DNA of 64,000 nt from Oikopleura dioica (lineage: Eukaryota; Animalia; Chordata). How positions within the stretch are numbered: position 1 is the first letter of the stretch; every line of letters starts with the position of its first letter. The stretch lies in NCBI GenBank assembly GCA_907165135.1, contig OU015568.1, positions 15,449,208 to 15,513,207 on the forward strand, read 5' to 3'. Positions 6,867 to 64,000 of this stretch are shown here, one piece after another. The translations under genes were made by a program, and so were the position numbers. The notes beneath the pieces were generated by a model. That model was not told the DNA's origin and searched no databases. It saw only the letters and a program-made list of their open reading frames with translations.

Positions 6867-7034
6867 CAGCCGGAGTCCAAATTAAGGGACACCAAGATAA
6901 GGGACTTTTTGGCTCGAAATGCCGAAAATCTGCGCCCCGATTTGTAAGTTTTCTATGTTAAAATGAACCAATTTTAGGGACTTTCTTTCGAAAATTTGGG
7001 ACCGAAAAAATTCCCTTGATTTGGACTGCGGCTG
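6867..7034. mobile_element. Tc1/mariner-type MITE (TA target duplication)
   Basis: TA|CAGCCGGAGTCCAAATTAAGGGA ... TCCCTTGATTTGGACTGCGGCTG|TA. Confidence 0.7.
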
Positions 7035-16493: not shown

Positions 16494-18682
16494 TCAATTT
16501 CCAAAATGGAGTTGATGATTAAGAAGTTGTTCTAACTTCTCCTCAGTATAGGAAAGAGAAATTGTATAAGCTTGAGGGAGTAAATACCACTTGTTTTTTT
16601 CCATGCTACTAACATTTTCATTAACCAGAGTCATAAATTCTTGATCTTTCCCAATATATCGGAAATCGCCCGTTTCTTCACTGTAGGATCTTGAAACCAT
16701 TTCATCATTGGCGTAATAAGGATTTCTTAGCGGTATTTTCACTGTCATTTTATCTGTTTTCAAATCGGTATTTTGAACGATGTATTCGTCGTTCTCAATC
16801 CTATCAACAACCATTTGATGAAAGTAGACATCATTGTCATCACGTAGATAAGCCGCTGTGACAGTAAGTGGACGTTCGAATTTGTAATTTTCATGAAGCA
16901 AAACTTCAAAACTATTTATATACGTTTAAACCGAATGTTAAACCTGATTCAAAGTCGAAAATAGTTTCTTCCAAGTCGGTTTTCAGTAATTTTATCATGT
17001 CCCAGCCACTTGGACAGATATATGTCTTGAACTTTAGCCGTCTAAGAAGTAAATCGATCTCACTTTGTTGAAAATCTTTCTCCAAGTCAGTCGGGTTAAG
17101 ATTGAGACCCGCCAAGCTTCGAGGATAAACAATCATTGTCAATGCAGAGAATATATATTCAAATGACCACATAAAATTTTCTTTAACACCAAGATCGTTT
17201 TTAATGGCGTGTCGTATAAGTGTTGTTATCGTTATTGGAACGCAGAGACTGGTGTCTCTCTGATCAAGTACATTTCTTGTTATATAATTGAAGTCTGAGC
17301 ATGTATATTTATTTAAGCTTTGACGAAGATCTGACATTCCAATAGATTTTGTCAGATTTGGATCGTCAAGCATCAATGATGGCGAAGCGTTTTTTAATGA
17401 TACTATTGAAGAAAATTGTCTCAATTGCCACCATGTTGCATATTTTCGTTTTAGCCACTGTGCATTAGAAGACTAAAACTTCGAAAATCATAAGGATTTA
17501 TCAAATAATTACTTCTAAAATTGATGAAATCTCCTCTTCCCCTTTCTCGTCGATTGGATTGAAAATAAGACTCCAAGCTGTTTTCCAATCGCAGAACATG
17601 AAAATCACCCAATTTGAAGACATTTCGGAGCCATAATTTATGCCGCAATTATTTTAGGTTCGCCATTTTTTAACATAACATTATCTGGCTTTATATCCCG
17701 GTGCGTAATGTTTTGTGCAAACAAATATTGTTCTGCCAAGCCAATTTTACTTGACATAGTTTTTCGTTCGAGTACGGTCAAATCTTCATCCTTGAGTCGC
17801 TTTCGTAAATTTTCATCGCAGAACTCCATTATTGTTATCCAACCTATGCAATCATCGCATTCAAAATCAAGACGGTAAAAAATTTCGACATTAACAAAAT
17901 GTTTGATGATATTATCATGATAAGGGATCGTATTTGGCCAGCTTTCAGTTTCATCGCAAAATGGTGTGTACTCTTAATGACTTTCTTGAACTTAATGGTC
18001 AATCAAGCATACCGGAGGAGAAATGAAATCGAAAATCTAAATCTTCAAAAGAAATTTGATTCGTGAATAAAGCTGGATCGAATGCTTGAACTCTTACTGC
18101 CATTTCAATTTGTCCAAATATCTGTTTGACGACTAAAGCTTCTCCTCCAACAGCTAAAACATCCACCAGTAATGAATTATCCAGAAACCATCTTCCTCGC
18201 TCCTCTTTCAACTCCGATCTGTATATGGTTTTATCCATCAAGGCTGGATTATTATTGAGAAGCGGAATTTGAAATCCATTGGGGTCTATCTCTGATTGCA
18301 TATTCCCAAAATTAGAAAACCCATAGAAATTTAAGTCTGCCTGCATATCTGGAATTCGCCACGCAACTTCTATCTTTGATGGAGCTTTTCCATTTGGGGT
18401 CTCTCCAGATTTAGCAAAAAGTTTGACCCAGCCTCCAAGTTGCATGAATCTTCTTCCAAGCTCCATTCGACCGATAGATAAAATAAGTCTATCCTTATCA
18501 TTTCTAGATGTCTCCCGTTTTATTTTCGGAAAAAAATTCTTCAACCAGTTTTCGACGTTCTCTTTAGTCAATGGCGGTGGGTGAGTTCCAATTTTACACG
18601 AAACAAGAACATTTTCGCAAGAATCATCTGATTCGTACTCAAAAAAATCTTGCCGCGGTCTTAGCTCATATTGACGTATCAT
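16494..18682 (-). pseudogene. Protein kinase-papain-like cysteine protease fusion, copy 1 (DFG/activation segment deleted)
   Basis: GGEALVV...MAVRVQ, HRDIKPDNVML, then DQRDTSLC and FHQMVVDRIENDEYIVQN. At about 17650 the sequence jumps from PKII into the CDWKTAW region out of frame, relative to copy 2. Start codon uncertain. Confidence 0.75.
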
Positions 18683-22581: not shown

Positions 22582-25013
22582 GCAATAAAATAAGCCTTTC
22601 TATGAAATAATAAGCAACAATTTTAAAAGTCAATTTAAGTATTCTATAGAACGAAAAATTGGTTGAGTAAGAGACCCCTATTTTAGACTCTTTCGTCAAG
22701 TATGCAGGCAGCTGACATTATCTAAACGGATTTAGGGATTTGGCCCTTTTGAGGATCTAGGAAGGTCATCGACTCGCTGCGGTCAGTCCAGATTTCACTT
22801 TCTAAGACGATAAGACTCTTCTAAGGCCCAGTTTCTAACGCAATCGTCCTACATCTTTACATTTTTGAAGCAATATTCAAAATTGCAAATGTTCAATTTC
22901 AGAAAAAAAAGAATAGATTACGTAAAACGGCGAATAATTGCTCCCCGTCATGAAAACAGTGATGGATGTCCGTTCATAGAAACATCAATCGACAGGTGTT
23001 GCTTGCGCTCATGGCTGACAGAAGTTGCGACTGCCGCGCTAAATTCATTATGATTAACAATTTGTGCATTACAAGGATGATCCCAGCTTATGCGCACCAG
23101 TCTGCCAAGAGCGTTGTCCGACGCAAAGTACCACTCGACTGTTATCTCCTTATTAAACCCTTACTCAGCCGAATTGTCATGCGCTGCTGATGTTGCCGTT
23201 CTACTGTACTGTAATTAAGAAATTGGGATATCGACAGTTTCTTTTTTGGTTGAAGCTCTTTGGATCTTATCTTGTTTTTTGACTGTATTACAGGCTGTTC
23301 AGAAGCTATGAAAAAGATTTACAAGTCGGCTTAGGGAATGCTCGATGACGTATTTTTTGCTTGTTAGAGCTTCAATTTTTCTGATAGCTTAGTATTTAGG
23401 AGGACTAAGAAGATTAAGTCTTTCTGAAAATTGGCTCATTTCTTAAAACAAACTTAAGGGTAGATGGCTCGAATCAACGAGAAATTAGGGCAATATTGAC
23501 CGAGATTTGGACCAAATTCTAGACAAATCAGATTTCCGCATTCGGCTGGTAGGCCAATCAGATTTCATAAAAAAAGTTAAGAGTTCTGTCTCGACCCCAA
23601 AATTAATGTCTTATTTTTTTCATGAAAAGCAAAAAAAAAATTTTTTTATCCTTTTTCTGACTCATATTTGAAGAAAATTTTCAATAAGTAAAAGTGTAAA
23701 TTGAATCAAGGAAGATGACTTTGGGTCGGTACGTTGCCAAAATGTTTGAAAAACATTGTTATAATGCAAATGCAAGGGATGAAGTTTCTTCCGCGTATTC
23801 TGCCACATCCTGACAACAAGCTGGACACCGTTGACCTTATCACGTGAACGTGTTCCCAGCGTTTTACATTTTATTTTGAAAAGATTCGATTAGGCCTCCA
23901 AGAAACTTTCCCTAACGGTCAATTAGTGATATTTAGCAGGTTGGAGGAGAAGCAAAAATTCGCTGAGTTTTAGAAATCTGAGACGAGAGGAACGACCAAA
24001 TTATGGGTTTATCAGCTCAATTTGGACAGTTTAGCTATTTTTCCTAAAGCAACTGTATCTTGCTTATTATTTGGCATTTGGAAAACTTCTCCTTTTTTAA
24101 AAACAAAAGAAATCAAAATGAGTTTTTTTCTGCTCTTGAACTTTAAATGACATGATTAATCGTCCTCAGATAAAATGTCGAAAAGTTAACTAATCTTACA
24201 AATCGGTCAAAGTATAAACACACGTTTTTGACATTGAGGTTCCGTTTCATTTGACGATAATTCATCATCAAAAATTTGATAAATGAGAAGCTTCTTTAGA
24301 AGAAAAAAACTACAGAATAGAAAACGCTCCATTTTGGTAACTACGGTCAGTGAAGGCTGACGGTTGAATCGAGCTTTATCTCCTTAATTTGCGGCGAAAT
24401 GGGCAGGCTCGGTTCTTTGAAACGTTCGAGCGCGGGACATTGGCGATGGAGTCCCCGAGTTCTAGTGGCGACGGGCTCTATCTGTTATTTCTGTCAAAGT
24501 GGCCGCCTCGAAAGAGCTCAACAACTTGGAAACAAGTGAACCGGCTGCGCTCAATTTACATTTCCAATTGCTTCTCTTTTTCTAATTGAAATTGAGTTTC
24601 GCGTTTAGAATAAAAAATCAGCTGTGAAAAGAAAGATCGAAAAAAGGGGGTAAAATTCTGCTGGAATCCGAATTCAAGCATCGTATCTCAGAAATAAAAG
24701 AATCCTTGCAATTTCCGTCATCACTTCGCAAAAATTCTTGATCGAAGATTTTCGTGATTTTCCCACGATTTTTTGGTACGACTCATTTCCCCGATTTTTT
24801 TCGTTGTAGCTAGTATGATGGTTTCAAAGCATCTTTATCAAGTGTCCTTGTTTTTTCGTATCAGCAGAGAGGTAATTAAAATCTTCTTCGTCATCATTTG
24901 GTGTCAACCTATAAAACCGGCTCTTTCGAGCAATAAAACCTGACGACAGTAAAAACTGATAGGAGGTTGTTATCATAGCGGAAAGCATTCGTATTCATCA
25001 TATATTTTCCAAC

Positions 25014-27418
25014 ATGAAGGTCACTTCTCACCAAAAAGAATTAACTAAAGAAAAAGTCGTGTCATGGTTAGAAAATTTTACAAAGAAATTGGAAAGATGG
25101 ACGAGCAGAGATGATTTGGATAGATTGATTTTATCCGCTGAGAGAATGTATTTTCAAGAAGAAGATGGTTCTGAGTGGACACAAATGGAAATCCAAGATG
25201 AAGAGGCGATCGTATTATTTTCAGGAGAGCGTGAAAAATTTAAGTTGAATTTGTTTCAGAAGAAAATTCTCGCTGAAAATCCTGAGTTTCGCGGAAGAAT
25301 TATTCGACGAACAGATTTAAAAGAAGAAGTTGGGGATTGGATTCTCGACAATTCTTTTCAGGAGAAATTACTATCAAGTGGTGGAGAAGCGATCGTTTTG
25401 AAAGAGAAATTTGAAGGACTTGAGCTTGCTGTTCGAGTTCAATGCTTTGATCCAGCGTTATTTACAAAGAAAAAGAATGAAGAAATGAAATTTGAAATCA
25501 ATCTTTCAAAAGACTTTGAAATCGCCGAAGATTTTATGCCATATAGTCCATCTCTAGGCCTCGGACGTAAAAAATCATCACCACCAGCCGGTCGTCGTAC
25601 GGTAACAAGAGTAGGCTCATTCGAAATCTCTTAAAAAGGGCTTTCTGTTAAGCTAATAAAAAAACTGGGCCCTGTCCTCCTTTTTCGAGATATTTGATTT
25701 TGAAGGTAAGCTTCGAAAAATATTTTTCAAAATAACTCGTAACAGAAAGGGACGTCTTTTTTACGTCCGAGGCCTATCCATCTCCCGAAGATCAACGGCG
25801 AAACGGACTAAATGGCATTCCATCGCATCCAAATGTGATCAAACACTTTTGCAATATAGAGATCTTCTCAACTATTGATGATGATCAGGAAGATTGCCTT
25901 GGCTGGGTGACAATCATGGAATGTTGTGATGCTGATCTAAGAAGCAGGCTGAAGGCGAATGACTTAACTTTAGATGAAAGAAAAAGAATTGCGATTGGAG
26001 TCTGGAATGGATTGGAATATTTCGGGAAAATAGGGATCAGGCATGAAGACCAAAAGCCCGAAAATATTCTTCTCAGAGATGGAGAAGCAATATGGATCGA
26101 TTTCGGCATACTCAGAGATGTAACGGGAAGAAAGAGTTATCGTCAAATGGGTTACACGCGTCGAGGAAGCAAGTACATGAGGATCAGTAGCCTTTGTGAG
26201 TTTGCAGTAGACGTATTCTTTTTATATTCGCTTTTTATCTAGATGCTGGCTCTGCCGCATTTGCTGGTAGTTACTCACTTTGTGGTAGGCCAGGTATTGG
26301 TGGTAATATCATGTATATTCTTATTCTTTGCGACTGGAAGACTGGATGGTATCTATGTTTTCATCCAATTGATGATGGTACACAAACAATGATTGGCGAA
26401 GAGCTCGAGGTAAGAGGATCACCTAAAATCGCTTTTAAAAAATACAAAAGGCCTGTAATGCAGAGTGGCTGACAGTTACTGAGCTAAGCAAATACTCAAA
26501 GCCAGTACAAAAAATAGAAAATGTATCGAAAATTGTTTCGCTCAAAAACATTCCTTCTCATATTTGTCTTGACGACGAGAATTTGACGAAGTCTTATGGG
26601 ATGGCATTCCTGAAACAACGTCTGACCAGATATCTAAATAAGGATTTTGAAAATTTGACAAAGAATGTTCTCGATCAAGGAGACAGCGATCTTTGCGTTC
26701 CCATTTCGGTCAGTGTTCTTATCCGATGGGCAATCAAGAATGATGTGAAGCTTGACGAGTCGTACATGGACTATATTCTGCAAACATATTTCAGTATTGA
26801 TATAATTTTCCCTACATTAACGATGATTGTTTATCCTCGGAGTCTTGCTGGATTTACTCTCAACCCGAAACGAGAAGAAAAAGGATTCCAAGAAAACAAA
26901 ATCGAGCTTCTTTTGAAGCGACTCAAGTATCCAACTTATTTCTTTGAAAGTGGATGGAATATGATCAGAAATTTTGGAACGACGATGGTCAATGCTGAGT
27001 TTGACTATGAAGAAGGTTCACTTTTAAGTAAAGTCTTTTATTTATTCTTGATTTAGTACTTCTTCACGAAAAATTTTCCTTTTCCCGTCCATTAACTGTA
27101 ACTGGCGCCTATCTTAACACTGACGGCAGCGTTGACTTTCACCAAATGACTGTAGATCGGATCGAGAATAAAGAGTATATTCTTCAAAATACTCTCACCT
27201 CTCATTCTCCATTCCAAATAAAAATTCCGCTAAAAAGACAATACTACGCTACATACGAAATGATGGAAGAGTGTTTAGATTTTTTCAACGATTATGTTTT
27301 CTATGGACCAAACAACGAGTTTTTAATGCTGGCTAACGAAGAATTCAACATGAAAGAAAAAACATGGTATCTTTTACCACAAGCTTACTCAATCGCTCTT
27401 ACCCCTGTACAATTGTAA
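25014..27418 (+). CDS. Protein kinase-papain-like cysteine protease fusion, copy 2 (interrupted by a MITE, otherwise intact)
   Basis: GGEAIV...LAVRVQ, HEDQKPENILL, IDFG, then DQGDSDLC and FHQMTVDRIENKEYILQN. Short GT-AG introns. Removing the MITE plus one target-duplication copy restores the frame (PYSPSPEDQRRNG). Confidence 0.8.
25555..25776. mobile_element. hAT-type MITE inserted in a coding exon
   Basis: TIR TAGGCCTCGGACGTAAAAAA; exact 8-bp target duplication TCCATCTC at 25547-25554 and 25777-25784. Confidence 0.92.
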
Positions 27419-29248: not shown

Positions 29249-29483
29249 TGTAGTGCTTTTGCAAAGAGACTACAAAAGAGGCTTGTGAGTGTAAAAAGTT
29301 TATTTATTTGTGAATGTCGAGCGGTCTTGATTTCGCTAAAAGAAAGACAGTATATATATTGTTAACAGAAAAACAGTGAAGGAGTAACTCGCGCAGTGAT
29401 CGGTTCACTCGGCCAGTGATCAGCACTTGAGTAGCACTTGAGTTAGCATTGATGTTCAGTAGCTCTTATGTAAAGACACTACA
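29249..29483 (-). repeat. 3' LTR
   Basis: Direct repeat of 36018-36252 with no difference seen; AATAAA and a TATA-like tract on the minus strand. Confidence 0.97.
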
Positions 29484-36017: not shown

Positions 36018-36252
36018 TGTAGTGCTTTTGCAAAGAGACTACAAAAGAGGCTTGTGAGTGTAAAAAGTTTATTTATTTGTGAATGTCGAGCGGTCTTGAT
36101 TTCGCTAAAAGAAAGACAGTATATATATTGTTAACAGAAAAACAGTGAAGGAGTAACTCGCGCAGTGATCGGTTCACTCGGCCAGTGATCAGCACTTGAG
36201 TAGCACTTGAGTTAGCATTGATGTTCAGTAGCTCTTATGTAAAGACACTACA
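36018..36252 (-). repeat. 5' LTR
   Basis: Direct repeat of 29249-29483. Confidence 0.97.
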
Positions 36253-53042: not shown

Positions 53043-53408
53043 TTAATTATTCGTTAAAGTGATTGAATAAGCTTGAGGCAGAAGATACCAACTTTCTGGG
53101 TCCATTTTTCCAAATTTTTCGTTTGCTAAATACAGGACGTAATTTCCAGAATCATTCCAACCAGTGTAAATATAATCGTTTAATTTCGGATTGAAGCAAT
53201 CACTCATCATTTGCTCAGAAGCATAATACCGGTTCTGTCGCGGAATTCGAAGAAGTGGACTGTGATTTTGATTATCAGAATTTTGAATAACGTATTCATC
53301 ACTTGGAATGTCGACGTCGTCAAGTACCATTTGATGAAAATACACTTCGCCGTCGGTAAAATAAGCGCCGGTGACTGTTACTGGACGATCGGTTATGAAA
53401 TTTTCATC
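53043..53408 (-). pseudogene. Last exon of a third kinase-papain fusion copy, cut off by insertions
   Basis: ENF..RPVTVTGAY..YFHQMVLD..EYVIQNS..WYLLPQAYSITL matches the last exons of copies 1 and 2. Confidence 0.85.
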
Positions 53409-54641
53409 CAGTGTTTGAAAAAAGAATGTGCGCGGGCAGCGAGCGGGCGAGCGGGGCGCGGGCGGGCGCGCTCGTCCATCCGACCACCTAAAATTTTGAC
53501 AAATTTTGCCCGCGCCCATCCGCCCATCAAAAAATCAAGCCTCATACTGCTCGCACGCGCACGTACCGCTCATGCGCCCCCGCTCGCCCGCCCTCCCCTC
53601 CCATGCTCGCCCCTTGCCCATGAGTGCATGTGATCGGACCGGAATTATCCACTAAAACGGACTCATTTTACACAGAACAAGGACTCATTTTACATAAAAT
53701 TGGGACTTATTTTACACAGAAAAATAGAAAAACGTTTATTTTCTGTGTAAAATAAGTCCGTATTCTATGTAAAAAAGGCCCCTTTTCTGTGTAGATTACG
53801 TCCGTTTTCTTTGTTGGTCGGTCGGTGGGTGGTGGGTTTTTGGTCCAGACAGTTTACTACCATCTACTACCAGCAAAAGTAGTTATTTTAAATAACTTAT
53901 CAAACAAGATCCGTCGTTTTCCCATTAACATTTTTAAATATTAAAAAGTAGATAAAAGAAAATAATGCGAAATAAGAGAATGCTACAACATACTACCATT
54001 ACTACCACCCGATTTAGTAATTTAAGGCTTGGGTGGTCGATTTGGCCCAAGCAGAGCTCATAAACTCTGGACTTATGAATGCTAGAATACCCAGTTATTG
54101 CTAAAAATAAAGATCTATCCTAGATCTTCTGAATTACAGAAGGTTTTTTTGTTCTGCCAAGATTTCTGCCAAATTTCGGAGTTTTTGAGCCTTAAATATT
54201 GGCCATTTTTGCGATTTTGGCCGAGATGCCAACTTTGAAGCCTCCAGAAGTGATTTTTTTCTTCAGAAGATCTAGGATAGATCTTTATTTTTAGCCATTA
54301 CTGGGTATTCTAGCATTTATAAGTCCAGAGTTGATGAGCTCTGCTTTGGGCCAAATCGACCACCCTGGCCTTAATGAATTCCTACGTTACTACGCTACAT
54401 ACTTTCAAACCCTGTTTTGGTCGGTTTTGTTCTTTTTACGCGTCTTTCTGTTGGTTTTCTTTGAGTAGAATTAAGCGCCCCGGGAGGGTGAGCGGGCGGG
54501 CGCGGGAGGGTGCCCGCGCACATCCGTCCATCCCAAAATCTGGCCTTTACGTGCCCGCTCCCATCCGCCCTTCCGAAAAATCGGACCCTTCGCGCCCGCG
54601 CTCGTCCGACCATTCGATTCTCAGGCTTTTTTCAAACACTG
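53409..54641. mobile_element. Non-autonomous hAT-type element (1233 bp) with GC-rich subterminal repeats
   Basis: 16-bp TIR CAGTGTTTGAAAAAAG; exact 8-bp target duplication TTTTCATC at 53401-53408 and 54642-54649. Confidence 0.92.
54026..54370. mobile_element. TTAA-flanked palindromic MITE nested in the hAT element
   Basis: Long near-perfect inverted arms (GGGTGGTCGATTTGGCCC...AAAGATCTATCCTAGATCTTCTGAA) flanked by TTAA. Confidence 0.85.
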
Positions 54642-54662
54642 TTTTCATCGTAGTCTGTGGTA

Positions 54663-54819
54663 ATTCGTCGGGGTCGCCCCGACAAATGAAATATGAAATA
54701 ACAGTCATTCGTCGGGGTCGATCCCGACAGATTGAAGACCAAAAATACACCAATTCGTCGGGGTCGAACAATTGAATACGACGAATCAGTGTTCACTCAA
54801 ACACCTATTCGTCGGGGTC
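54663..54819 (+). repeat. Four spaced copies of ATTCGTCGGGGTC(G), two forming hairpins
   Basis: Starts at 54663, 54707, 54753 and 54807; partial inverted copy CGACGAAT at about 54779. Confidence 0.85.
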
Positions 54820-54911
54820 ATTCCTTGCTATGACGCAATCCCTATCGTCAGCCTTAATACGAAAGAGAAAATTCCTCTTCTCGGAATGTCAAAAAGGGTT
54901 ACACTATATAT

Positions 54912-55156
54912 CTGGGGTCGGCAACTAGCCACAAAATGCCGTGGCTAGGCTAGGCTAGGCTAGGCTAGTTAACTAGCCATGGCTAGTTGGTCAATGGCTA
55001 TTTTGGCTAGTTTTTTGGCTAGTTTAAGCTAGCCAATGGCTAGTAAAATGGGTGATATTACGGTGGCTAGGCTAGGCTAGGCTAGTTCTAGCCTAGCCAA
55101 ACTAGCCATTTTACTAGCCATTGGCTAGTTGGCTAGTGGCTAGTTGCCGACCCCAG
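54912..55156. mobile_element. MITE rich in GGCTA repeats
   Basis: TIR CTGGGGTCGGCAACTAGCCAC; target duplication not clean. Confidence 0.8.
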
Positions 55157-56027
55157 CTAACATACCCCCCCCCTAAATTTCCGCGCAATTCGTGGTATTT
55201 CGCCCAAGTTTCCGTTTCCTAACTTTTCTAAAACACCCAAAATTTACGCTTCCTCGCGTTCCCCCGCGTTTCCAAATTTCTTTCCTAACTTTTCCGCGTG
55301 CGCCAAAATTTACTCGCGCGCCGCTGAAATGCGCGTCAACGCTAATGATTCATTAACGGGCGCGTTATCCAATCATAGCGCCAAATTAAGCCAAGGGATT
55401 TCAGTCTTTTTTTTTCCAGAGGAAGATCAATTGTAGAAGTTTAAGTCCAGAACTTAGTTAGAGAAATTACATTTTGGAATATATTCTGACACTGACCTTT
55501 GATACACCTTTACCTTTTTAAACATTGTTATTTTTTAATTTTTAAATATTGTCTGTTTTATTGAAGCGATAAGAATGACAGTAAAATTTATGATTTTCAG
55601 TGGTTTATGGTGGTGGAGTAATGACGTCATCAATAGCTGTACATCGAGTTTGCGGCGTGAATCGACATAAAATCGCGAGTTTTCTTAGCAGGTAAATCAA
55701 CGGCAGTATTTGAGAATCTTTAAAAGAAATTGAATAAGTTATTCAGAATAGCGTAAATATTATTGATTCTTACCCTTTCTTCAATCGTTTTTCTCCACTC
55801 TGGCATATCTCTGTGCTGTCGGCTGGAGAGATCCTTTTTGGAAGCTAATTAGCGATTTTAAAAGAATACTCTGTTCATTAATCAAAAAAAGTGAACAGAT
55901 GCTTACTATCCTTTTAACAATTAACCGTTTCAGGAAATAATGGACACGAACAGAGAGCAGATTCCACTTCACTTTATTGTGCCGACAAAAGAATACAGAC
56001 AGCCGCACCACGAATTCTACCTTGTTC

Positions 56028-56343
56028 AGCAGAACCATTTTCCATCCTCAATTCAGTCTACTCGTCACTGCTTTCGAAGACTCGCAAATCAAGTAACGAC
56101 TTCTCTCTTTTACTCCATTTTAAAGCGATCTAGATTTAGGAATTTAAAAGTGGCGAATTTGAGAGGACGCTAAAAGGACAAACAGACACCGTTCAAGACT
56201 GCGCATTTGATTCCACGGGAAAATAACTCGGTAAAAATCGCCAACTAGGATCATTTGCTAAATAATTAATTGATAGCTTCATGTCCCGCTAATCTAACAA
56301 TTAAACTATGGAATTTATCGACTACGAATGTATAAAATCATTG
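56028..56343 (+). pseudogene. PAFAH1B1: LIS1 WD40 fragment with introns, stops and a frameshift
   Basis: RTIFHPQFSLLVTAFEDSQIK / [29 protein letters not shown] / ASCPANLTIKLW resembles LIS1 [21 protein letters not shown]...[20 protein letters not shown]...ASCSADMTIKLW (recalled). Confidence 0.85.
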
Positions 56344-56957
56344 ACAATGTCCTGCTTGCAGCGGAAAGCTACGAGAAGCAACGTCGATGGATGAGCGCAT
56401 TGTCCACTGCGTCTGGAGCTTACCAAGCTATTCCCGGAAATATCAGCGTCCCAAAAGATTCGCCAAAAAAGTAATGACAATTTTTGCAATTCCTTCATTG
56501 TTAATCCTTCGTAGAAACTTGAACACACGGCGAGACGTTCTCCCAGTCGCGAAGCGTTCAATGTCAGTCGAGAATATTTCGCGCAAGATGAATGCGATCA
56601 ATATTGACGTGCTTCGATCTTCAAGTACCTCTACGCCACCCGCAACAGTAAGTTAAAATTTCCGTTTGTCTTCTTTTACTTTTGGTTTATAGAGCGAGGT
56701 GGTTCTGCGTCCCAAATCTTTTGAAGAGCAAAAACTACTCCGTCTTCTATCGACATCCCGCCCATGTCGAGTGGCAACATCGAAAAGCAAACAACTGGCG
56801 AAACTCGTTTCCAAAGCGCGAGAATTCCCTCGAAACGCGGAAGATTGCAGAGGATAAGGAATGGGGCAATGCTCTTCACATCTTCAGCAATCATTTATAC
56901 AAAAATGCCGGATACTTCATGTAAACTCAGTCTTGTTTAAAACACTGCTGCTTGTAC

Positions 56958-57359
56958 TAAAATAGGTGGTGGTCTAAACTTTGAAGTTCTTACGTGCGAT
57001 AAGAACTTTGTGTGGCCTAAACTTTGATTCTTCCCATGTGTGATTCTATGAGAAAGTGGCCTAATCTTTGATTCTTTCCATGTGTGAAAGTGGTCTAAAC
57101 TTTGAATTTCCCCTGAGGCGCTCTGACTAGTTCCATGTGTCATCACCCTGAATGAAAACCGTAAACCTAATTGGTCTGATTAAAGCGTAGTGGCCTTAGC
57201 AGGCAGAGCTCTAGTCACCGATGGCAGAAGCGCCTCCGGGGAAATTCAAAGTTTAGGCCACTTTCTCAAAGAGCCACACATGGGAACGATCAAAGTTTAG
57301 GCCACCCGAAGTTCTTATCGCACATACGAACTTCAAAGTTTAGACCACCACCTATTTTA
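56958..57359. mobile_element. Foldback MITE with internal GTGGYCTAAACTTTGA repeats
   Basis: About 110-bp inverted arms beginning TAAAATAGGTGGTGGTCTAAACTTTGAAGTTC. Confidence 0.8.
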
Positions 57360-57844
57360 TTTACGACTCGTTCTGCCGCACCTTTGTCTCGCAATAGATA
57401 TTCTCCGTTAATCATCGACCACTATATTTATTTCGCTCGTTATTGATTTGTCTTTCTGTAGGAATGTTTCCGCGTGATATTCTGAAAACTCAAACAACTG
57501 TCTAAAAATATTCCAGCCATTTCTCTTAATCTATTAGTCTGTTTACCCTTTTTAGTGGCATGACATCAACATTCTAAGCTTTTTCCTGTCAAATCCCTTT
57601 ATTCACTTGAAGAAGAGCTCCCAAAACGCGACTTCGCACAACATCACTCGCTATCTCCGAGAAAACGGGGCTATCAATTCAGCGAGGTATAAAAGCAAGA
57701 ACTGCTCATTTTTGAATCAATTAAAGACTGGCTTAGTAAGTCTAATCTGACTGAAAGATCTAGACGGCAAATTTGTAAAAAAAAGACGTTCATCTTCCGC
57801 GAGTTCCACACATCCAGCTTCTACACCTTCACGGATCAGTACTC

Positions 57845-59181
57845 TCAGCAAGCTCTCGAAGGCCAAAAACGCACTTTCCGGGAACGAAAGAACATTGCTG
57901 CTTTCATCAAAAAAGAATTCGACAAGAAATCAAGGTAAATTATAAATCGCTTTCCTAGACAATCCGCAAAGTGACAAATCCACGGACCACAGGAGTGTCC
58001 ATCCAATTGCATTGTCGGTAGCTCTGCGCATTTCGATCGCCATTTTCCAGTTGACGGGCTCGCAATGTTCTTGTCCAGAAATGTGTTTTTGATGAATCCA
58101 CGGGCAAATTGTTCGTCAAATCGTTGTCCAATGAAAGGTAGAAGCAAGTCCAAAATTTCTTTTTTCTTTTTTTTAGCATCGGATTTTTCTTGAGAAGTTC
58201 CATAGAGATTTGCAAGGCTATCAAAGTAGGTACATTCCTGTAGAGCAAGATCGAGTTGAAGTAGAGAATAATGACCAATAGGATCACTAGAATGAAATTT
58301 AATTAGGAAGAAGTCCATTAGTGCATAAAAATAGATATTTATTTAACTTACGATTGATGGATTGGAATCAGGATTCTTTCCTTTGTCTCGAACAATCTTC
58401 CACTGAAAAAATTCTTCGCCATTTCCGGTGATTGACTGGCCAAAGAAATCTTAGAAAATAGTTATTCTTTAAAAAATTTTATAGACTTACAGATACATTC
58501 ACGGATATTGCCGCAATTTCAGGATGTTCATGCTCAAGAACACGGTAAAAAGCGTCGACTGCTGTGCTGAAAAACCATCGATTGCCTCTGATGCTCTCGA
58601 AATCCGCTGGAGTGAGCAATTGACCCAGGACATATCGGTTCCGTGGCTCCTCCCTTGGGATCTTTCTTTCTGGTTCCTCGGCTTCGGATTCGACTTCTTC
58701 TTCCTTCTCCTCTGGTGCTTTTTCAGGCTCATCGGGGATCGGGTTTTTCTTGGTTTGACTTCTTTCCATTTTCCTCTTTTTCTTCGTTTCGGCGCATTTT
58801 CGAGCTTTTGCTGCGTTTTTCAGTTGAATAATCTTCTTCACTCTCTCTTCCAATTCAATGTCGGGTTCCTAAAAAAAGTTAAAATCAGAAAATATCTCTC
58901 AAATTAATTACCTTCAGTTCTATTCGCGTTTTATAAGAAAAGCGATCGCTTTCGATAATCGGGTCCTTATAAAGAAAGTCTTGCAAAACTTCTTTGCTGT
59001 AGAGCTTGTAGAGTGATTCTTTTCCTTCTCTTCGTTTTTTTCGCGCCTTTTCTTCTTCTGGGGCCTTTGGAAGTTCTCGATTGACGTGGTTTTTCTCCTC
59101 GTTGACGAGATCAGCGTGAAGAAGTCCGCTTTTATCATTAATTTCACTTTTTATTACTTTTAATTTCATTTTTAGGATCAA
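57845..59181 (-). CDS. Ulp1/SENP-like (C48) cysteine protease with charged N-terminal region, multi-exon, 5' end unclear
   Basis: DFESIRGNRWF..AVDAFY, ILIPIHQ..GHYSLL..TYFDSL..QLDGHSCG: His/Asp/Gln/Cys in C48 order; GT-AG introns in frame. Confidence 0.75.
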
Positions 59182-59616
59182 ATTGAACGAGTGCTGCCTG
59201 TATCAAGAAGAATATGCGTTCAAACTCTGCCGGCTCTTACAAAGAACTTTCGAAAGAAAACTGATCAGGAGAAATGCACTAGGTACTGTTTCTAAAAGTT
59301 ATAGCTCTCACATTCTTTTGAATGCAAAATTAACTTTCCTTCTTGCATAAGAACCAATGATGCAATCTGGGTGAATACAGTAGACCGCTTCATTGACTTT
59401 GAGGACTGCGTCAGCTCGATTCGGTGGTTCATCATTTTTCGCGTACTGCTCTGTCACCCATGATCGCATCAACTTGCCGAGAGTTGCGTGATATCCCTGA
59501 TCCGCCGGCTTAAATTTATTTAGAAAGAAAAAATCAACGAAGAAAATTCGAGAGCTCAACTACTCAAGATGATTTCCCAGAAACCAGCGATCAATATGTG
59601 CCAATGACAACAATCC

Positions 59617-60806
59617 GTAGAATGTCTGTCTTATTCTTCACATCCTTCAATAACCATTTCTGACCACAAACCAATCCTTGCCAGTTTCATCGCCCGAACC
59701 GAGAGGATCAACAAAGAAATCTACTACTCCGTGTACAAAGAAGTTACCAGTTGGCTAGACAAGCACGAGATTGAGCTTATTCCGCAAAGGCTGTTTCAAG
59801 CAAAGCAATCGACTTTGGAAAGCTGAAATTTTGGAACGAGCGATCGCAGAATACGGGAAAGACGCTGGCGCAGTTTCAGATCATCGATTCGAAAGTGTTC
59901 TCGCCGGACAAGGACATCTACGAAGCTTTTAATTCAAACATCGGCTTGTGGATCGATCCAAATAAGGTAAATTGCAATGAAAATCCATGATTTGAAGTTA
60001 TTTTCAGGTAATCTTACAGCCAGATAGTGGAGATGCCTCAATTTATACAATAGGATTCGATCTCAACATCAATAAAGAAGTCGTCTCAAAGTTCAACTTC
60101 GGTGTGAAGCAAGGAGACAAGTTCGTGAATCCCGTCGACGATCTCATTCTCATCCTCAAGTTGAAAAACGGGCCTGATCATTACATAACTCTTTCCGGAA
60201 ACTGAACATACTCGGCGTTTGGAATGCCATTCATTGCTCTTACACATTCATTCTTCAAAAAAGCTTCCTTTATATCCTGCGACTTCTCTAGTTCTCAATC
60301 AATTAGGTACTTTCAAGATAAATTCGAGACCCTCAACATTTTTTCTCAGAAAAGAATGCCTCAAACGATGCTTCGATGAGGGAGCAGAATTTCAACCTGC
60401 TTTCTACGTTTTACTGAATCACATCGTCAACCATGGATTTACAGAAAACTACTTTTAGATCGAGACACTTCCAGGTTCAGTTGCTTCCGTGGCAGAAGTA
60501 TTGTTGCTCTTCCACAATTCGAATCCCTTCCCAATAATCTTATGTTCGCATTTTGAAATTTGCCTTGTCATCGTGGACCACGTGAGGCTTTGTAAAAATC
60601 TCGTTGAAAAGCTCGACCTCAGATCGCAAAACAACTTTCAATATTTAGTAAGTCTCCAAATCTCATCATTCAACGAACAACTTTGGTTAGATAATGTTCC
60701 TGAAAGAGGTTCTCAAGCATGGTAGCATCAATTGATGTACAAGTGAATTCCTAGCTGGACTATTTGCTGGATGCATTTTACGCCCTCAACTTCCTAGTCA
60801 TAATCG
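59617..60806 (+). pseudogene. OCRL: OCRL/INPP5B fragment (end of 5-phosphatase, ASH and RhoGAP domains), decayed
   Basis: ISDHKPI..WLDKHE..IP; LILKLKNGPDHYITLSGN*..FG; ETLPGSVASVAEVLLLF; LAGLFAGCILRP; stops and frameshifts; introns retained. Confidence 0.85.
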
Positions 60807-60864
60807 TAAGTTTCTATGAAATATGGTTTAATTGAACACTATTGAAGGCGAAAAAGTTCGACCC

Positions 60865-61010
60865 TCGAAGTCCTCAACGTCTGCCCCAATGCAATCGTTG
60901 ACTTCCAGTTCGGCTCTTCTGGCCAGTCAGATGCTGCAGCGATTCAGTTCTAGTTCAACTCCTTCCTTTTCCCAAATGCTACTTCTGGAACTTACACCAT
61001 GAGCTGCGAC
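60865..61010 (+). pseudogene. Zona pellucida (ZP) domain C-terminal fragment
   Basis: NVCPN..IQF*FNSFLFP..TYTMSCD followed by a GTAAG donor; internal stop. Confidence 0.5.
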
Positions 61011-61060
61011 GTAAGCGTTTTTTTTTTGAAAATTTGAAATGTTCTTATCTCTAAAACAAG

Positions 61061-61424
61061 GCGCCGAATCGTAAACGACGCGATAAGGATTCCGATCTCC
61101 CACGACGCTCGCAGAATCCGCGGAAGAAAAACAAAGGAGCTCGGACTCAATTTCAACAAGAAACGAGTGAAAACGAGGACGACGACGAGGATGTTGACGA
61201 TGATGGACCTTGCGTTGCTGGTAAGATGGATAAAGTTTTTGTGTTTTCACGCATTTTTAGGCCAATGCAAGCGTCCAGACGGCAACAAATTCGAGCGGGT
61301 CTATTTCGAGCGCTGCGCAAAATGGTACCACATGTTCTGCCTCAACGTTAACCCGAAAGACGTCCGCGACGACCCGAAGTTCGTCTGCTCCGACTGCCAG
61401 ATCCTCGAAGCTGCAACAAGTTAA
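61061..61424 (+). pseudogene. C-terminal PHD finger fragment, KDM5/lid-like, degenerate
   Basis: Acidic tract, then CVAGQCKRPDGNKFERVYFERCAKWYHMFC...FVCSDC-stop; the expected W and one Cys are replaced by R and F. Confidence 0.65.
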
Positions 61425-63579
61425 CACTCTCGTTCTCAAAAAAGCTCGAGATGACCACCCGCTGCTCCGCCCGCACGACCATTCTTCGGAAACCTTCGAA
61501 TTCAGCTCCATTTTCAAGCGAAGATTCTTTTTCTTATTTTACCAATTTTCAATTTCAATTTGTTTGCAACTTTTATCAACTAAAAGCTTACTCTCTTTGC
61601 ATTTTTGTACAAAATCCTTTGTTCCTTTGTGCGCTTGAATCTTGTTTATCGACAAATTAAGACATTTATTGAACCCATCACTATCTTCATTATTCCCCAT
61701 AAAGCCTAACTCACGATCGCTGAAAAAGGAACGATACAATTAATACATACAAAAATAACCAAACATTTACAGATTTACTCGTCTCTTTATGAATATCCGT
61801 CTTGTTGTTTTCCAAAACCTATTTTCCTTTTTTCCGGCCTATCTTCGAATACAGTACCTTCGGCTGGCTCCAGTTTTAGTCTCATTTTATCTCAGCTCCG
61901 GTTTTTCCAATTTCTATTTTTCGAAGCCATTAATTAAAATTGAAGTTTTGAATTTCGAGTTAGAAAATTGTTCATTTCATAAATTAGGCAATTTGTCATT
62001 TAGATTTAGCTCCATTCACGTCAGTACCAAAGCTCACTCAATCTCTTACCACTCATCTTCGGAAAAATTACCTGACAGAGATCAGTGGAATTAGCCAGCA
62101 GAAAGGCCATTTCGATGTTGGAATGCTCAGCGTCCATTCCTTTCAAGAAGCCGTGCTGGGACGCGTTGTCTTAAATAGTTTTAATAATTCATTATTTTTT
62201 TTAATAAGATAAAGAACCCAATAAAAGTAAAATGTGCTGATTATCTTCCACCAGTTCAGCATTCCATCTCGTGATCATGTGCGTCCAAATCACATTGGTC
62301 ATCGAAGCCTTGCTACTTGTGTATAGATGTAGATCCTTCGGGCCATCACACGTCATCGTAACGATATTCATATAATAATATGAAAAATTCTCCGTCTTGT
62401 AGATCAGCTGTTTTTTGGCGACTTTAGTGAGCTCCTTCGGGATATTCGCCACGATTACTTGATATTTTTTATAAATTTTATAAAAGAAAAATTTTAGATG
62501 ATCCGGTATGAATGGAAAAAGTCGTTAAAAGCAGCCGAGAAGAAGGAAAATCTGATCAAAATCAACAACTACTCGGAGAGAGCGATGCAAAAAGCTGAAG
62601 ACGACAAAAAAAGAATTCAACGACTGGTTGGAGAAAACTAGAACTGCCGAAGCTACTAAAAAGGTTTATCTTTAAGATTAATATTTATAAAATTTCCTGT
62701 TGACCATCTTCTTGAACCATCAGCAGCAATCGCAGTAAGGCTCGTCGCTCCGATACGCTTGTTTCCGAGCTGCTTTCTATTCCAATTCACCTTCTTGGAG
62801 CCCCATCCTTTGGAATGTGCACGTTGTAGCTCTACTTTCTTCTCGTCTATATTCATAACATCTTTTAAAGGTTTCATTTTGTATTTTTAACATTACAATA
62901 AGAGTAAATGAAGCCGTTCCTGACGGGTTACGATTATTAATTTTATCGACAAGTTCAGCTGTATGACCGGCAAGTTTAGAAAATTCGATTGGTTTCTTTT
63001 GCTCCGTTTGTTTTTCCATCCCAAAGCCAAGTCGTTTGACTAATGAAACAGTACTTCCTCTTCGGTTTTTTCCGGTATTGCCTTAATTTTGGTTAATATT
63101 TAAAAGGTAGGTCACTTATTACCAACTAAATAAGTACTTGAATATGTTCGACTGTTGTTTTTGTACTCCTCAGGACAGGTTTTTCCATATTGAATTGCAT
63201 GGTTGTTTACTCTAGCTCTGAAACAGTCTAATGGACGTAAAACTTTTCCATTGTCAGCATCTAAGGCTCTGCGGGAAATGTTCGTGAGTTCAGCTTCTTC
63301 GATGATGTCATCCTCTTTGTCAGCAAGAGAGAAATGGATGGTTCTAAAGTTATAAGAATTAATTAGAGAATTGTTATTAGGCTACTACTTCTCGAAATCA
63401 ATTCTTCCAGCGTTATAAACTTGTCGATTGTCTTCAGTTCCATGCACTTCGAGGCTCGCGTATGTCTTGTCCTTGTGATCATACCAATATCGTACTTTGT
63501 CTTTGTGTATACCAAGGTCATTGCCAATCTGGACATATCTTAACGTAATTTTAAGGCTCTGATCGTTGGAAAAACGAAA

Positions 63580-63970
63580 GTGGTCGTCATCAAGCTCAAT
63601 GGTGGTCGCGGTACTTCCACGGGCTTCACTTGTCCCAAGTCGATCATTTCCGTCAGATCTGGATTGAACTTTTTGGACTTGACTGTTCAGCAAATCGAGC
63701 ACTTGAACAAGACCTACGAGACCAACGTCCCCTTGGTTTTGATGAACTCCTTCAACACCGAAGAAGACACCCGAAAGATCCTCCGAAAGAACAACAACTG
63801 CCAGGTCGACATCAAAATGTTCAACCAGCTTCCAACGAATCAACAAAGAAACCCTTCTCCCCGTCCCCACCAAGGATCTCTACAACCTCAAGGATGGTAC
63901 CCACGGTGACATCTACATGGCCCTTTACGACTCTGGTTTGATTGAAGAGCTCATAAAGCAGGGCAAAGTA
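63580..63970 (+). pseudogene. UGP2: UDP-glucose pyrophosphorylase fragment, decayed
   Basis: VVIKLNGG(R)GTS..PKS..VRSGLNFLDLTVQQIEHLNKTY..VPLVLMNSFNT; frameshift near FNQ; deletion in WYPPGHGD; no N-terminal part. Confidence 0.9.
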
Positions 63971-64000
63971 ATAATAAGCGAATTTGGTTTAAGTCTCAGG

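Follow-up and report, generated by a model that had tools for sequence, protein, structure and literature searches.

New gene structures in plants have a major source in the capture of gene fragments by DNA transposons; Pack-MULEs are non-autonomous, and KI-MULEs carry an Ulp1-like protease gene. In animals, such capture is documented mainly as small, mostly single-copy events. The animal Pack-TIRs hold host sequence inside the terminal inverted repeats (TIRs) of cut-and-paste elements, with the parent sequences still present and with template-switch joints; the median captured size is 224 bp, the models put forward for capture are gap filling and fork switching, multicopy cases are ascribed to transposition after capture, and neither Oikopleura, nor Ciona, nor tunicates are mentioned (Tan et al. 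2021, PMC8277862). The pogo elements, with lengths of 1.2-5.2 kb, have a TA target-site duplication, TIRs, a DDE_1-type transposase bearing a DDxD triad, and open reading frames (ORFs) that number one or two (Gao et al. 2020, PMC7386202). A further animal case is Turmoil-1 of C. elegans, which PMC2572040 presents as a DNA transposon with host protein-coding sequence (transduplication), in the form of two coding sequences within the terminal repeats. Here, we describe P, an element of 11.84 kb bounded by TIRs that spans positions 55160 to about 66999 of a 64,000-nucleotide stretch of Oikopleura dioica DNA (the window, C1:15449208-15513207) and of the sequence adjoining it, in a searched genome of 64.3 Mb on 19 scaffolds. 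P is likely to be a cut-and-paste, pogo-like element of the IS630-Tc1-mariner group, autonomous in appearance, as judged from a gene model for its transposase, and loaded with Pack-type cargo. All positions are whole-window coordinates; P reaches about 3 kb beyond the window end, and its parts past 64000 were read from about 3 kb of adjoining sequence.

With the animal Pack-TIRs, P shares non-transposon sequence lying between the TIRs of one family and parent loci that persist elsewhere in the genome, as well as joints of the template-switch kind. Unlike those elements, it has accumulated about 6.3 kb from 14-15 loci, retains an apparent transposase gene, and holds its cargo in introns and in a uniformly antisense orientation. 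The resemblance to pogo elements consists of the TA duplication and TIRs, which are also features of the wider IS630-Tc1-mariner group, a predicted DDxD triad in a DDE_1-like transposase model and no more than two predicted genes; the differences are a length of 11.84 kb, a transposase model with eight introns (two of about 2.5 kb), no helix-turn-helix (HTH) domain detected, and a second gene for a C48-like protease. Capture from several loci with introns kept, and an Ulp1-like protease gene within a DNA transposon, are reminiscent of Pack-MULEs and KI-MULEs, whereas P lacks Mutator TIRs and the 9-11-bp duplication and resides in an animal. Turmoil-1 is likewise an animal DNA transposon with host protein-coding sequence, in contrast to P, however, with two coding sequences instead of many fragments distributed over introns and a tail. 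What sets P apart is a chordate host with one of the smallest animal genomes, a seemingly autonomous element whose size has been more than doubled by host DNA stacked in introns, and a strict orientation rule under which ten of ten fragments are antisense, together with mismatch-free copies that point to very recent movement. If confirmed, P would offer a tractable system for host-DNA capture, with joints fresh enough to read, and one in which to ask why only antisense cargo persists and whether exon shuffling, or antisense RNA against the parents, can follow.

The limits of P were set by genome self-comparison, where a block of identity to a second locus spans 55157-67003; the first 255 bp and the last ~490 bp of this block are the two ends of one MITE family (MITE, miniature inverted-repeat transposable element), and by sequence these ends of P belong to a Stowaway-like MITE family. 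The termini begin ACATACCCC and are flanked by TA, and the TIR is 168 nt long and imperfect, with 77% complementarity between the ends and an identical outer 14 nt. These ends are common to about 17 MITEs of 0.7-2.3 kb. The terminal 23-mers are found at 17 (left) and 18 (right) genomic places, and pair up as 12 short copies, the two copies of 11.85 kb and three of intermediate size, two measuring 1.4 kb and one 2.35 kb. Uninterrupted family members measure 0.69-0.84 kb (for instance, C2:10416837-10417590), and TA is present on both sides of all nine family copies inspected, with no sequence in common further out.

The order of events at the insertion site can be read with the help of a separate TIR element, X, an uninterrupted copy of which on scaffold C4 was used as the empty site. 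When P and a single TA are taken out of the sequence that follows a 245-bp MITE on its right, the 8 bp found to the left of that MITE reappear as a repeat, with the remainder of X after them. Thus, X was hit first by the 245-bp MITE and later by P, the latter with a TA duplication. The other half of X is found 755 kb away, adjoining the second copy of P on its right. X itself has inverted ends of ~140 nt and is represented by two copies of ~1.29 kb each, 98-99% identical and 14.4 kb apart on C4, and by a further ~0.75-kb copy on C5; its right half (C1:14736805-14737287) bears a very high-copy MITE of ~200 bp.

A preliminary description, made from the letters of the window, had recognised in this region of a compact chordate genome a mobile element with host gene fragments taken up as DNA, and this is borne out. 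The mosaic had been placed at 54648-64000. Its true start is 55160, the stretch before it being half of X and the 245-bp MITE; the sequence is inside the element throughout from 55160 up to 64000, as claimed, and the far end, found on extending the window, is at 66999. The vehicles that had been named, a Helitron, Pack-MULE or CACTA element, have left no signature. The uptake of many intron-bearing fragments is typical of such elements (PMC8277862), but the TA-flanked TIRs beginning ACATACCCC already contradict all three, and scans of the ORFs of P with Pfam returned no MULE, Rep-helicase or TNP-type ORF. Specifically, a Pack-MULE was rejected for a duplication that is TA and not 9-11 bp and for the lack of Mutator-type TIRs, a Helitron for the presence of TIRs and a TA duplication and the lack of a 5'-TC/3'-CTRR hairpin end, and a CACTA/EnSpm element for termini that lack CACTA ends and for the lack of a 3-bp duplication. 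Capture by one of these elements is therefore scarcely conceivable.

The second copy of P (copy B, the window copy being copy A) lies in inverted orientation at C1:14737288-14749133, 755 kb from copy A, and over 11.85 kb the two differ by no mismatches and nine one-base indels. On its left, copy B is bordered by sequence unrelated to the left flank of copy A, the boundary with P falling exactly at the TA-flanked terminus, and for this reason a plain segmental duplication was rejected. The preliminary description had allowed that the region might turn out to be single-copy, with no defined termini and no resumption of the host gene. Instead, there is a further copy with shared ends, the termini are defined, and the interrupted gene resumes. 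A foldback of ~975 bp, 90% self-complementary, is located at C1:14749205-14750186, 71 bp from the insertion site of copy B.

Resumption of the interrupted gene is seen at the wrong locus. A single gene of a kinase-protease family continues from the left flank in the window (53053-53412) into the sequence right of copy B; the two parts are collinear with an unplaced contig and with the window copies of that family at 16.5-18.6 kb and 25.0-27.4 kb. What stands to the right of copy B is sequence of locus A, swapped in the assembly, leaving ~2.4 kb of kinase-protease copy 3 (C1:14734899-14737287) misplaced 755 kb away, where it ends at another 500-N gap. Correction of the assembly at this point is a practical gain of the analysis. 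The missing 5' part of copy 3 was not found on either side. On the copy-A scaffold, a 500-N gap (67004-67503) starts 2 bp after the TA duplication.

We regard it as likely that the two copies are real insertions. It is unlikely, on the evidence at hand, that there is only one P and that the second copy stems from haplotype merging, from contig chimerism or from a rearrangement that broke at the left end of P, in which case recent mobility would be unproven. Such an origin would fit the swapped right flank, the position of copy A 2 bp before one 500-N gap and of copy B 2.4 kb from another, the restriction of A/B differences to homopolymer-type indels, and the published pipeline for the Okinawa O. 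dioica assembly, which combined Canu, HaploMerger2 and 3D-DNA and inserted arbitrary 500-bp gaps (PMC8008620). It does not, however, account for a left junction of copy B that falls exactly at the TA-flanked terminus, nor for the depth of P-specific words in two DNA runs of one study, which was 177 and 74 versus 113 and 33-43 for the adjoining single-copy gene, a ratio of 1.6-2.2, word depth being a rough measure and the runs that hold P possibly sharing animal or stock with the assembly, to the detriment of the two-insertion reading. A contig stop at the exact end of the repeat also suggests that reads have two continuations there. In a run of another study, the flanking gene was recovered at ~95% identity and no P-internal contigs were present. 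Short-read contigs at the right junction were all broken by high-copy MITEs, leaving neither the P/X junction nor a second right flank readable, and contig loose ends at 6999 and 7006 trace to X copies and MITE-family members located elsewhere.

The cargo of P amounts to ~6.3 kb (~53% of the element) in about twenty decayed pieces, which were mapped by a genome self-search of 54648-64000, focused searches and local alignments (Table 1). The self-search matched pieces to other loci at 78-100% identity, along with several MITE families. The parent loci, on four scaffolds, number 14-15 when two more short matches of 52 and 35 bp are counted, and the cargo appears to derive from at least fourteen host genes; identity of piece to parent ranges from 69 to 100%, and is mostly 84-93%. 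Adjacent pieces meet at joints that are blunt, share 1-3 nt of microhomology or are separated by a few filler bases. Alignments to the parents continue unbroken through changes of parental reading frame, that is, through introns, and fragments open in the middle of exons, as evidenced by the OCRL-like piece, which begins within a 256-codon exon of its parent. The copies bear frameshifts and internal deletions of 110-329 bp, and these deletions do not correspond to introns.

These results uphold much of what had been said of the region: abutting pieces of unrelated host genes on the plus strand, introns kept, frameshifts present, and, on searching the genome, parent loci elsewhere at 84-93% identity. 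The assignments of individual fragments likewise agree with Pfam matches in the fragments or their parents. For LIS1, the parent matches LisH_PAC1 and WD40, and for the PH-domain end, the parent ORF matches PH; the OCRL/INPP5B fragment matches the phosphatase end and the ASH domain, the KDM5-like fragment matches PHD and its parent has a PLU-1 domain, and the UGP2 fragment matches UDPGP at E 1.5e-38. Past the window end, the assignment to PIP5K was likewise borne out by Pfam. The ZP domain that had been placed at about 60865 is not upheld, with no Pfam match and no parent locus.

Two of the fragments are of additional interest for the MITEs associated with them. The PH-gene fragment contains a 403-bp MITE (56958-57360) with 114-nt TIRs and at least 25 genomic copies, which is absent from the parent and entered the fragment after capture. 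Directly left of it, the 71 bp at 56889-56959 match the parent at 100%, compared with ~90% for the neighbouring stretches, and may reflect gene conversion. Conversely, the KDM5-like parent bears a 402-bp MITE flanked by TTAA and with piggyBac-like ends (C4:9405713-9406114); the absence of this MITE from the captured copy indicates that its insertion postdates capture.

The minus strand of P is predicted to encode a DDE_1-type transposase with a DD34D triad, a prediction for which the homology evidence is moderate. The preliminary description had noted exon runs at 59308-59520, 62090-62450 and 62690-63560 that it could not assign; they do contain minus-strand exons, and now fit a transposase-like model of nine exons and 444 open codons. 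The introns, in order of transcription, measure 82, 2494, 41, 58, 239, 48, 2563 and 43 nt. Two of them have GA-AG borders, a class of intron unusually frequent in O. dioica (PMC7072748), and the other six are GT-AG. In the model, the first aspartate lies in the motif NIDE of exon X1, the codon for the second is split between X2 and X3 (LLLL-D-NASQH), and the third, 34 residues further on, stands where X4 begins (Q-PADQG). This DD34D spacing depends on the chosen splice model, and falls within the DD29-56D range of pogo elements (PMC7386202).

Support for the model comes from profile comparisons. With a profile built from six DDE_1 ORFs of the same genome, the X2 and X3 ORFs rank first and second among the 308 ORFs of P (E 5e-4 and 7e-3) and cover adjoining profile positions, 100-186 and 186-217; with a second profile, X3, X1 and X2 are the top three, in profile order. 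Comparison with DDE_1 by hhalign gave 8e-4 for X3, 5e-3 for X2 and 0.14 for X1, again collinear. Among neighbours in a protein language model, X2 is placed with DDE_1 clusters in 27 of 30 cases, and X4 with Tc1-like DDE fragments. A word search with a pogo ORF of the genome found no more than 2 proteins, which did not suffice for a broad profile. For an N-terminal HTH domain (CENP-B_N, HTH_psq or HTH_Tnp_Tc5), exons N1, N2 and Ea gave no Pfam match, even at E up to 10, and any resemblance is at the motif level.

The second gene predicted in P encodes an Ulp1/C48-like protease on the same strand, with its ATG 95 nt downstream of the transposase stop codon, an arrangement in which the two genes may be co-transcribed in an operon-like manner. 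In the protease model, the frame stays open for 391 codons across introns of 43, 41 and 65 nt, all three GT-AG. The last exon matches Peptidase_C48 over profile positions 95-182 of 217, at E 9.9e-6 and 26 bits against a curated cut-off of 20.7. The His, Asp, Gln and Cys motifs occur in this exon in the order of the family, and the last 35 profile positions are unmatched. An AlphaFold model of this exon alone had a predicted local distance difference test (pLDDT) score of 46 and is unusable. The exon has no paralogue in the genome, the only copies being those in the two copies of P, and no relatives among 1.84 billion representative proteins, where the sole match was a spurious repeat protein. 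A tblastx comparison of P with the rest of the window, the extension and the copy-B flanks gave no matches, which argues that the C48 gene was not copied from the neighbouring kinase-protease family.

A number of observations weigh against reading P as an autonomous element with two functional genes that has recently moved. No single exon of the transposase model reaches the Pfam threshold for a DDE_1 or HTH domain, and the single ORFs at 59311-59559, 62204-62524, 62780-63082 and 63115-63381 had no match in a Pfam scan of ~45 stop-free ORFs of P; nor did a genome-wide six-frame scan for DDE_1 (PF03184) report P. Splice sites were picked to hold the frame open, and GA donors are required at two introns. 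In the transposase model, the final short exon coincides with a short match to another locus, and the transposase may be truncated; similarly, short matches to other loci coincide with the C-terminal ~45 codons of the protease ORF, and the protease domain may be truncated at its C-terminus. In one poly(A) RNA run, no reads fell on the final 3 kb of P, where exons N1 and N2 lie. A word search found X2 in no predicted protein of a public collection, and no relatives of X2 were found in metagenome contigs. Finally, the assembly lacks the true right flank of copy B, for which a TA duplication is presumed.

Several of these points would be expected if P were a non-autonomous Pack-type MITE, that is, a Stowaway-like MITE of ~750 bp filled with captured DNA, in which the transposase is a defunct remnant or a string of ORFs formed by chance and movement, if any, occurs in trans. 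The ends of P are indeed ends of a MITE family, and the failure of Pfam to detect the exons, the non-canonical donors and the lack of a sign of expression in the poly(A) run or in public predicted proteins all fit such an origin. On the other hand, the three of the 308 ORFs that score best against DDE_1 profiles sit next to one another on a single strand and follow the order of the profile, all three catalytic aspartate motifs can be placed with a 34-residue spacing, and 444 codons have stayed open while the adjoining captured genes are full of frameshifts. Furthermore, the transposase exons have no copy in the genome other than those in P, leaving no other transposase of this sequence able to act in trans. 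An origin of P as a filled MITE is accordingly quite unlikely, and a pogo-like element that is autonomous in appearance is the preferred reading.

The cargo can be placed relative to the two predicted genes. Three of the transposase introns, two of them the introns of ~2.5 kb, hold cargo. Intron 2 contains the UGP2 and PIP5K pieces and three more, intron 5 a piece from C5:5820318-5820854, and intron 7 the KDM5-like, OCRL-like and 59-bp pieces. The tail behind the protease gene (55412-57844) contains pieces from C2:10971771-10971899, LIS1, the PH-domain gene and C5:9581417-9581919, as well as the later 403-bp MITE. The last protease exon contains a match of 52 bp, and the end of one fragment overlaps the protease stop. 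With nearly all of the identified cargo in three introns and the tail, neither reading frame is interrupted by cargo. All ten fragments that could be oriented are sense on the plus strand, as had been claimed for the recognised host fragments, and antisense to both genes of the element (two-sided binomial p ~0.002). Here, orientation was taken from the parental coding strand, and the count leaves out the pieces from C1:3716923, C1:1935046 and C1:11776013.

A mechanism for the build-up of cargo can be proposed for P as a pogo-like element. Breaks in or beside P, at excision or at a stalled fork, would be repaired by copying short ectopic chromosomal templates, along the lines of the gap-filling and fork-switching models for animal Pack-TIRs (PMC8277862), and serial template switching would give rise to the blunt or 1-3-nt microhomology joints and to the internal deletions. 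Host pieces would survive only if taken up in introns or in the tail, and in antisense orientation; with pieces in sense orientation, the transposase pre-mRNA would acquire splice and poly(A) signals. Once loaded, P would then have transposed at least once, and very recently, by means of its own enzyme. A more far-reaching proposal is that the introns are cargo bays and that the antisense orientation is functional, each transcript being antisense to at least ten host genes (LIS1, OCRL, KDM5, UGP2, PIP5K and others) and feeding a double-stranded or small-RNA pathway that tunes the parents or lets the host silence P. We consider this improbable; if true, an autonomous animal transposon would serve as a natural multi-target antisense array and as an exon-shuffling vehicle that keeps its own mobility.

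Table 1. Coordinates of P, its predicted genes, captured fragments and left-flanking elements (window positions; those above 64000 lie past the window)
Feature	Position	Strand	Closest locus, identity and remarks
X, left half (separate TIR element, outside the mosaic)	54642-54911		98% identical to C4:2206647-2206861; collinear with C5 copy
245-bp MITE	54912-55156		20-nt perfect TIR; 8-bp target-site duplication; hAT-like; GCTAG-repeat-rich
Left TA target-site duplication of P	55158-55159		from empty-site reconstruction
P left end, TIR and subterminal sequence	55160-55411		93-94% identical to left ends of MITE copies, e.g. C2:10416837-10417093
Gene fragment	55891-56019	+	C2:10971771-10971899, 91%; in 3' tail
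LIS1 (PAFAH1B1-like)	56026-56346	+	C2:1139587-1139910, 90%; stops 1 nt short of parental splice donor
PH-domain gene, 3' part	56346-57527	+	C2:6986525-6987531, 89-100%; 198-bp internal deletion
Unnamed-gene fragment	57527-57868	+	C5:9581417-9581919, 92% then 69%; 114-bp internal deletion; abuts/overlaps end of C48 ORF
Ulp1/C48-like protease model	57845-59169	-	exons 59169-58912, 58868-58491, 58449-58352, 58286-57845; ATG at 59169
Pogo/DDE_1-like transposase model	59265 to ATG at 66167	-	9 exons, 444 open codons; TGA at 59267-59265
Transposase exons X5, X4, X3, X2	59265-59291, 59335-59508, 62072-62169, 62218-62457	-	frame check
Transposase exons X1, Eb, Ea	62697-62861, 62920-63081, 63123-63343	-	frame check
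Transposase exons N2, N1 (past window)	65838-65930, 66013-66167	-	frame check
59-bp piece	59532-59590		C5:8872378, 97%; in intron 7
OCRL/INPP5B-like, 3' 1.4 kb	59607-60856	+	C1:11124346-11125748, 89-92%; 110-bp internal deletion, frameshifts; in intron 7
KDM5-like 3' part with PHD finger	61030-62064	+	C4:9405668-9407110, 93-98%; in intron 7
Gene fragment	62467-62667	+	C5:5820318-5820854, 84-88%; 329-bp internal deletion; in 239-nt GA-AG intron 5
UGP2 (UDP-glucose pyrophosphorylase)	63581-64450 (past window from 64000)	+	C1:15126809-15127792, 86-88%; in intron 2
PIP5K	64452-65198 (past window)		C4:14176970-14177721, 90%; in intron 2
Piece	65210-65466 (past window)		C1:3716923, 90%; in intron 2
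Piece	65472-65657 (past window)		C1:1935046, 78%; in intron 2
Piece	65678-65757 (past window)		C1:11776013, 96%; in intron 2
P right end	66511-66999 (past window)		TA at 67000-67001

Elsewhere in the window, the ORFs of the kinase-protease family at 16551-18595, 25005-27403 and 53053-53412 had no Pfam match at E up to 0.01. A perfect direct repeat of 235 nt, at 29249-29483 and 36018-36252 (6.8 kb apart), flanks long minus-strand ORFs and resembles the long terminal repeats of retroelements.

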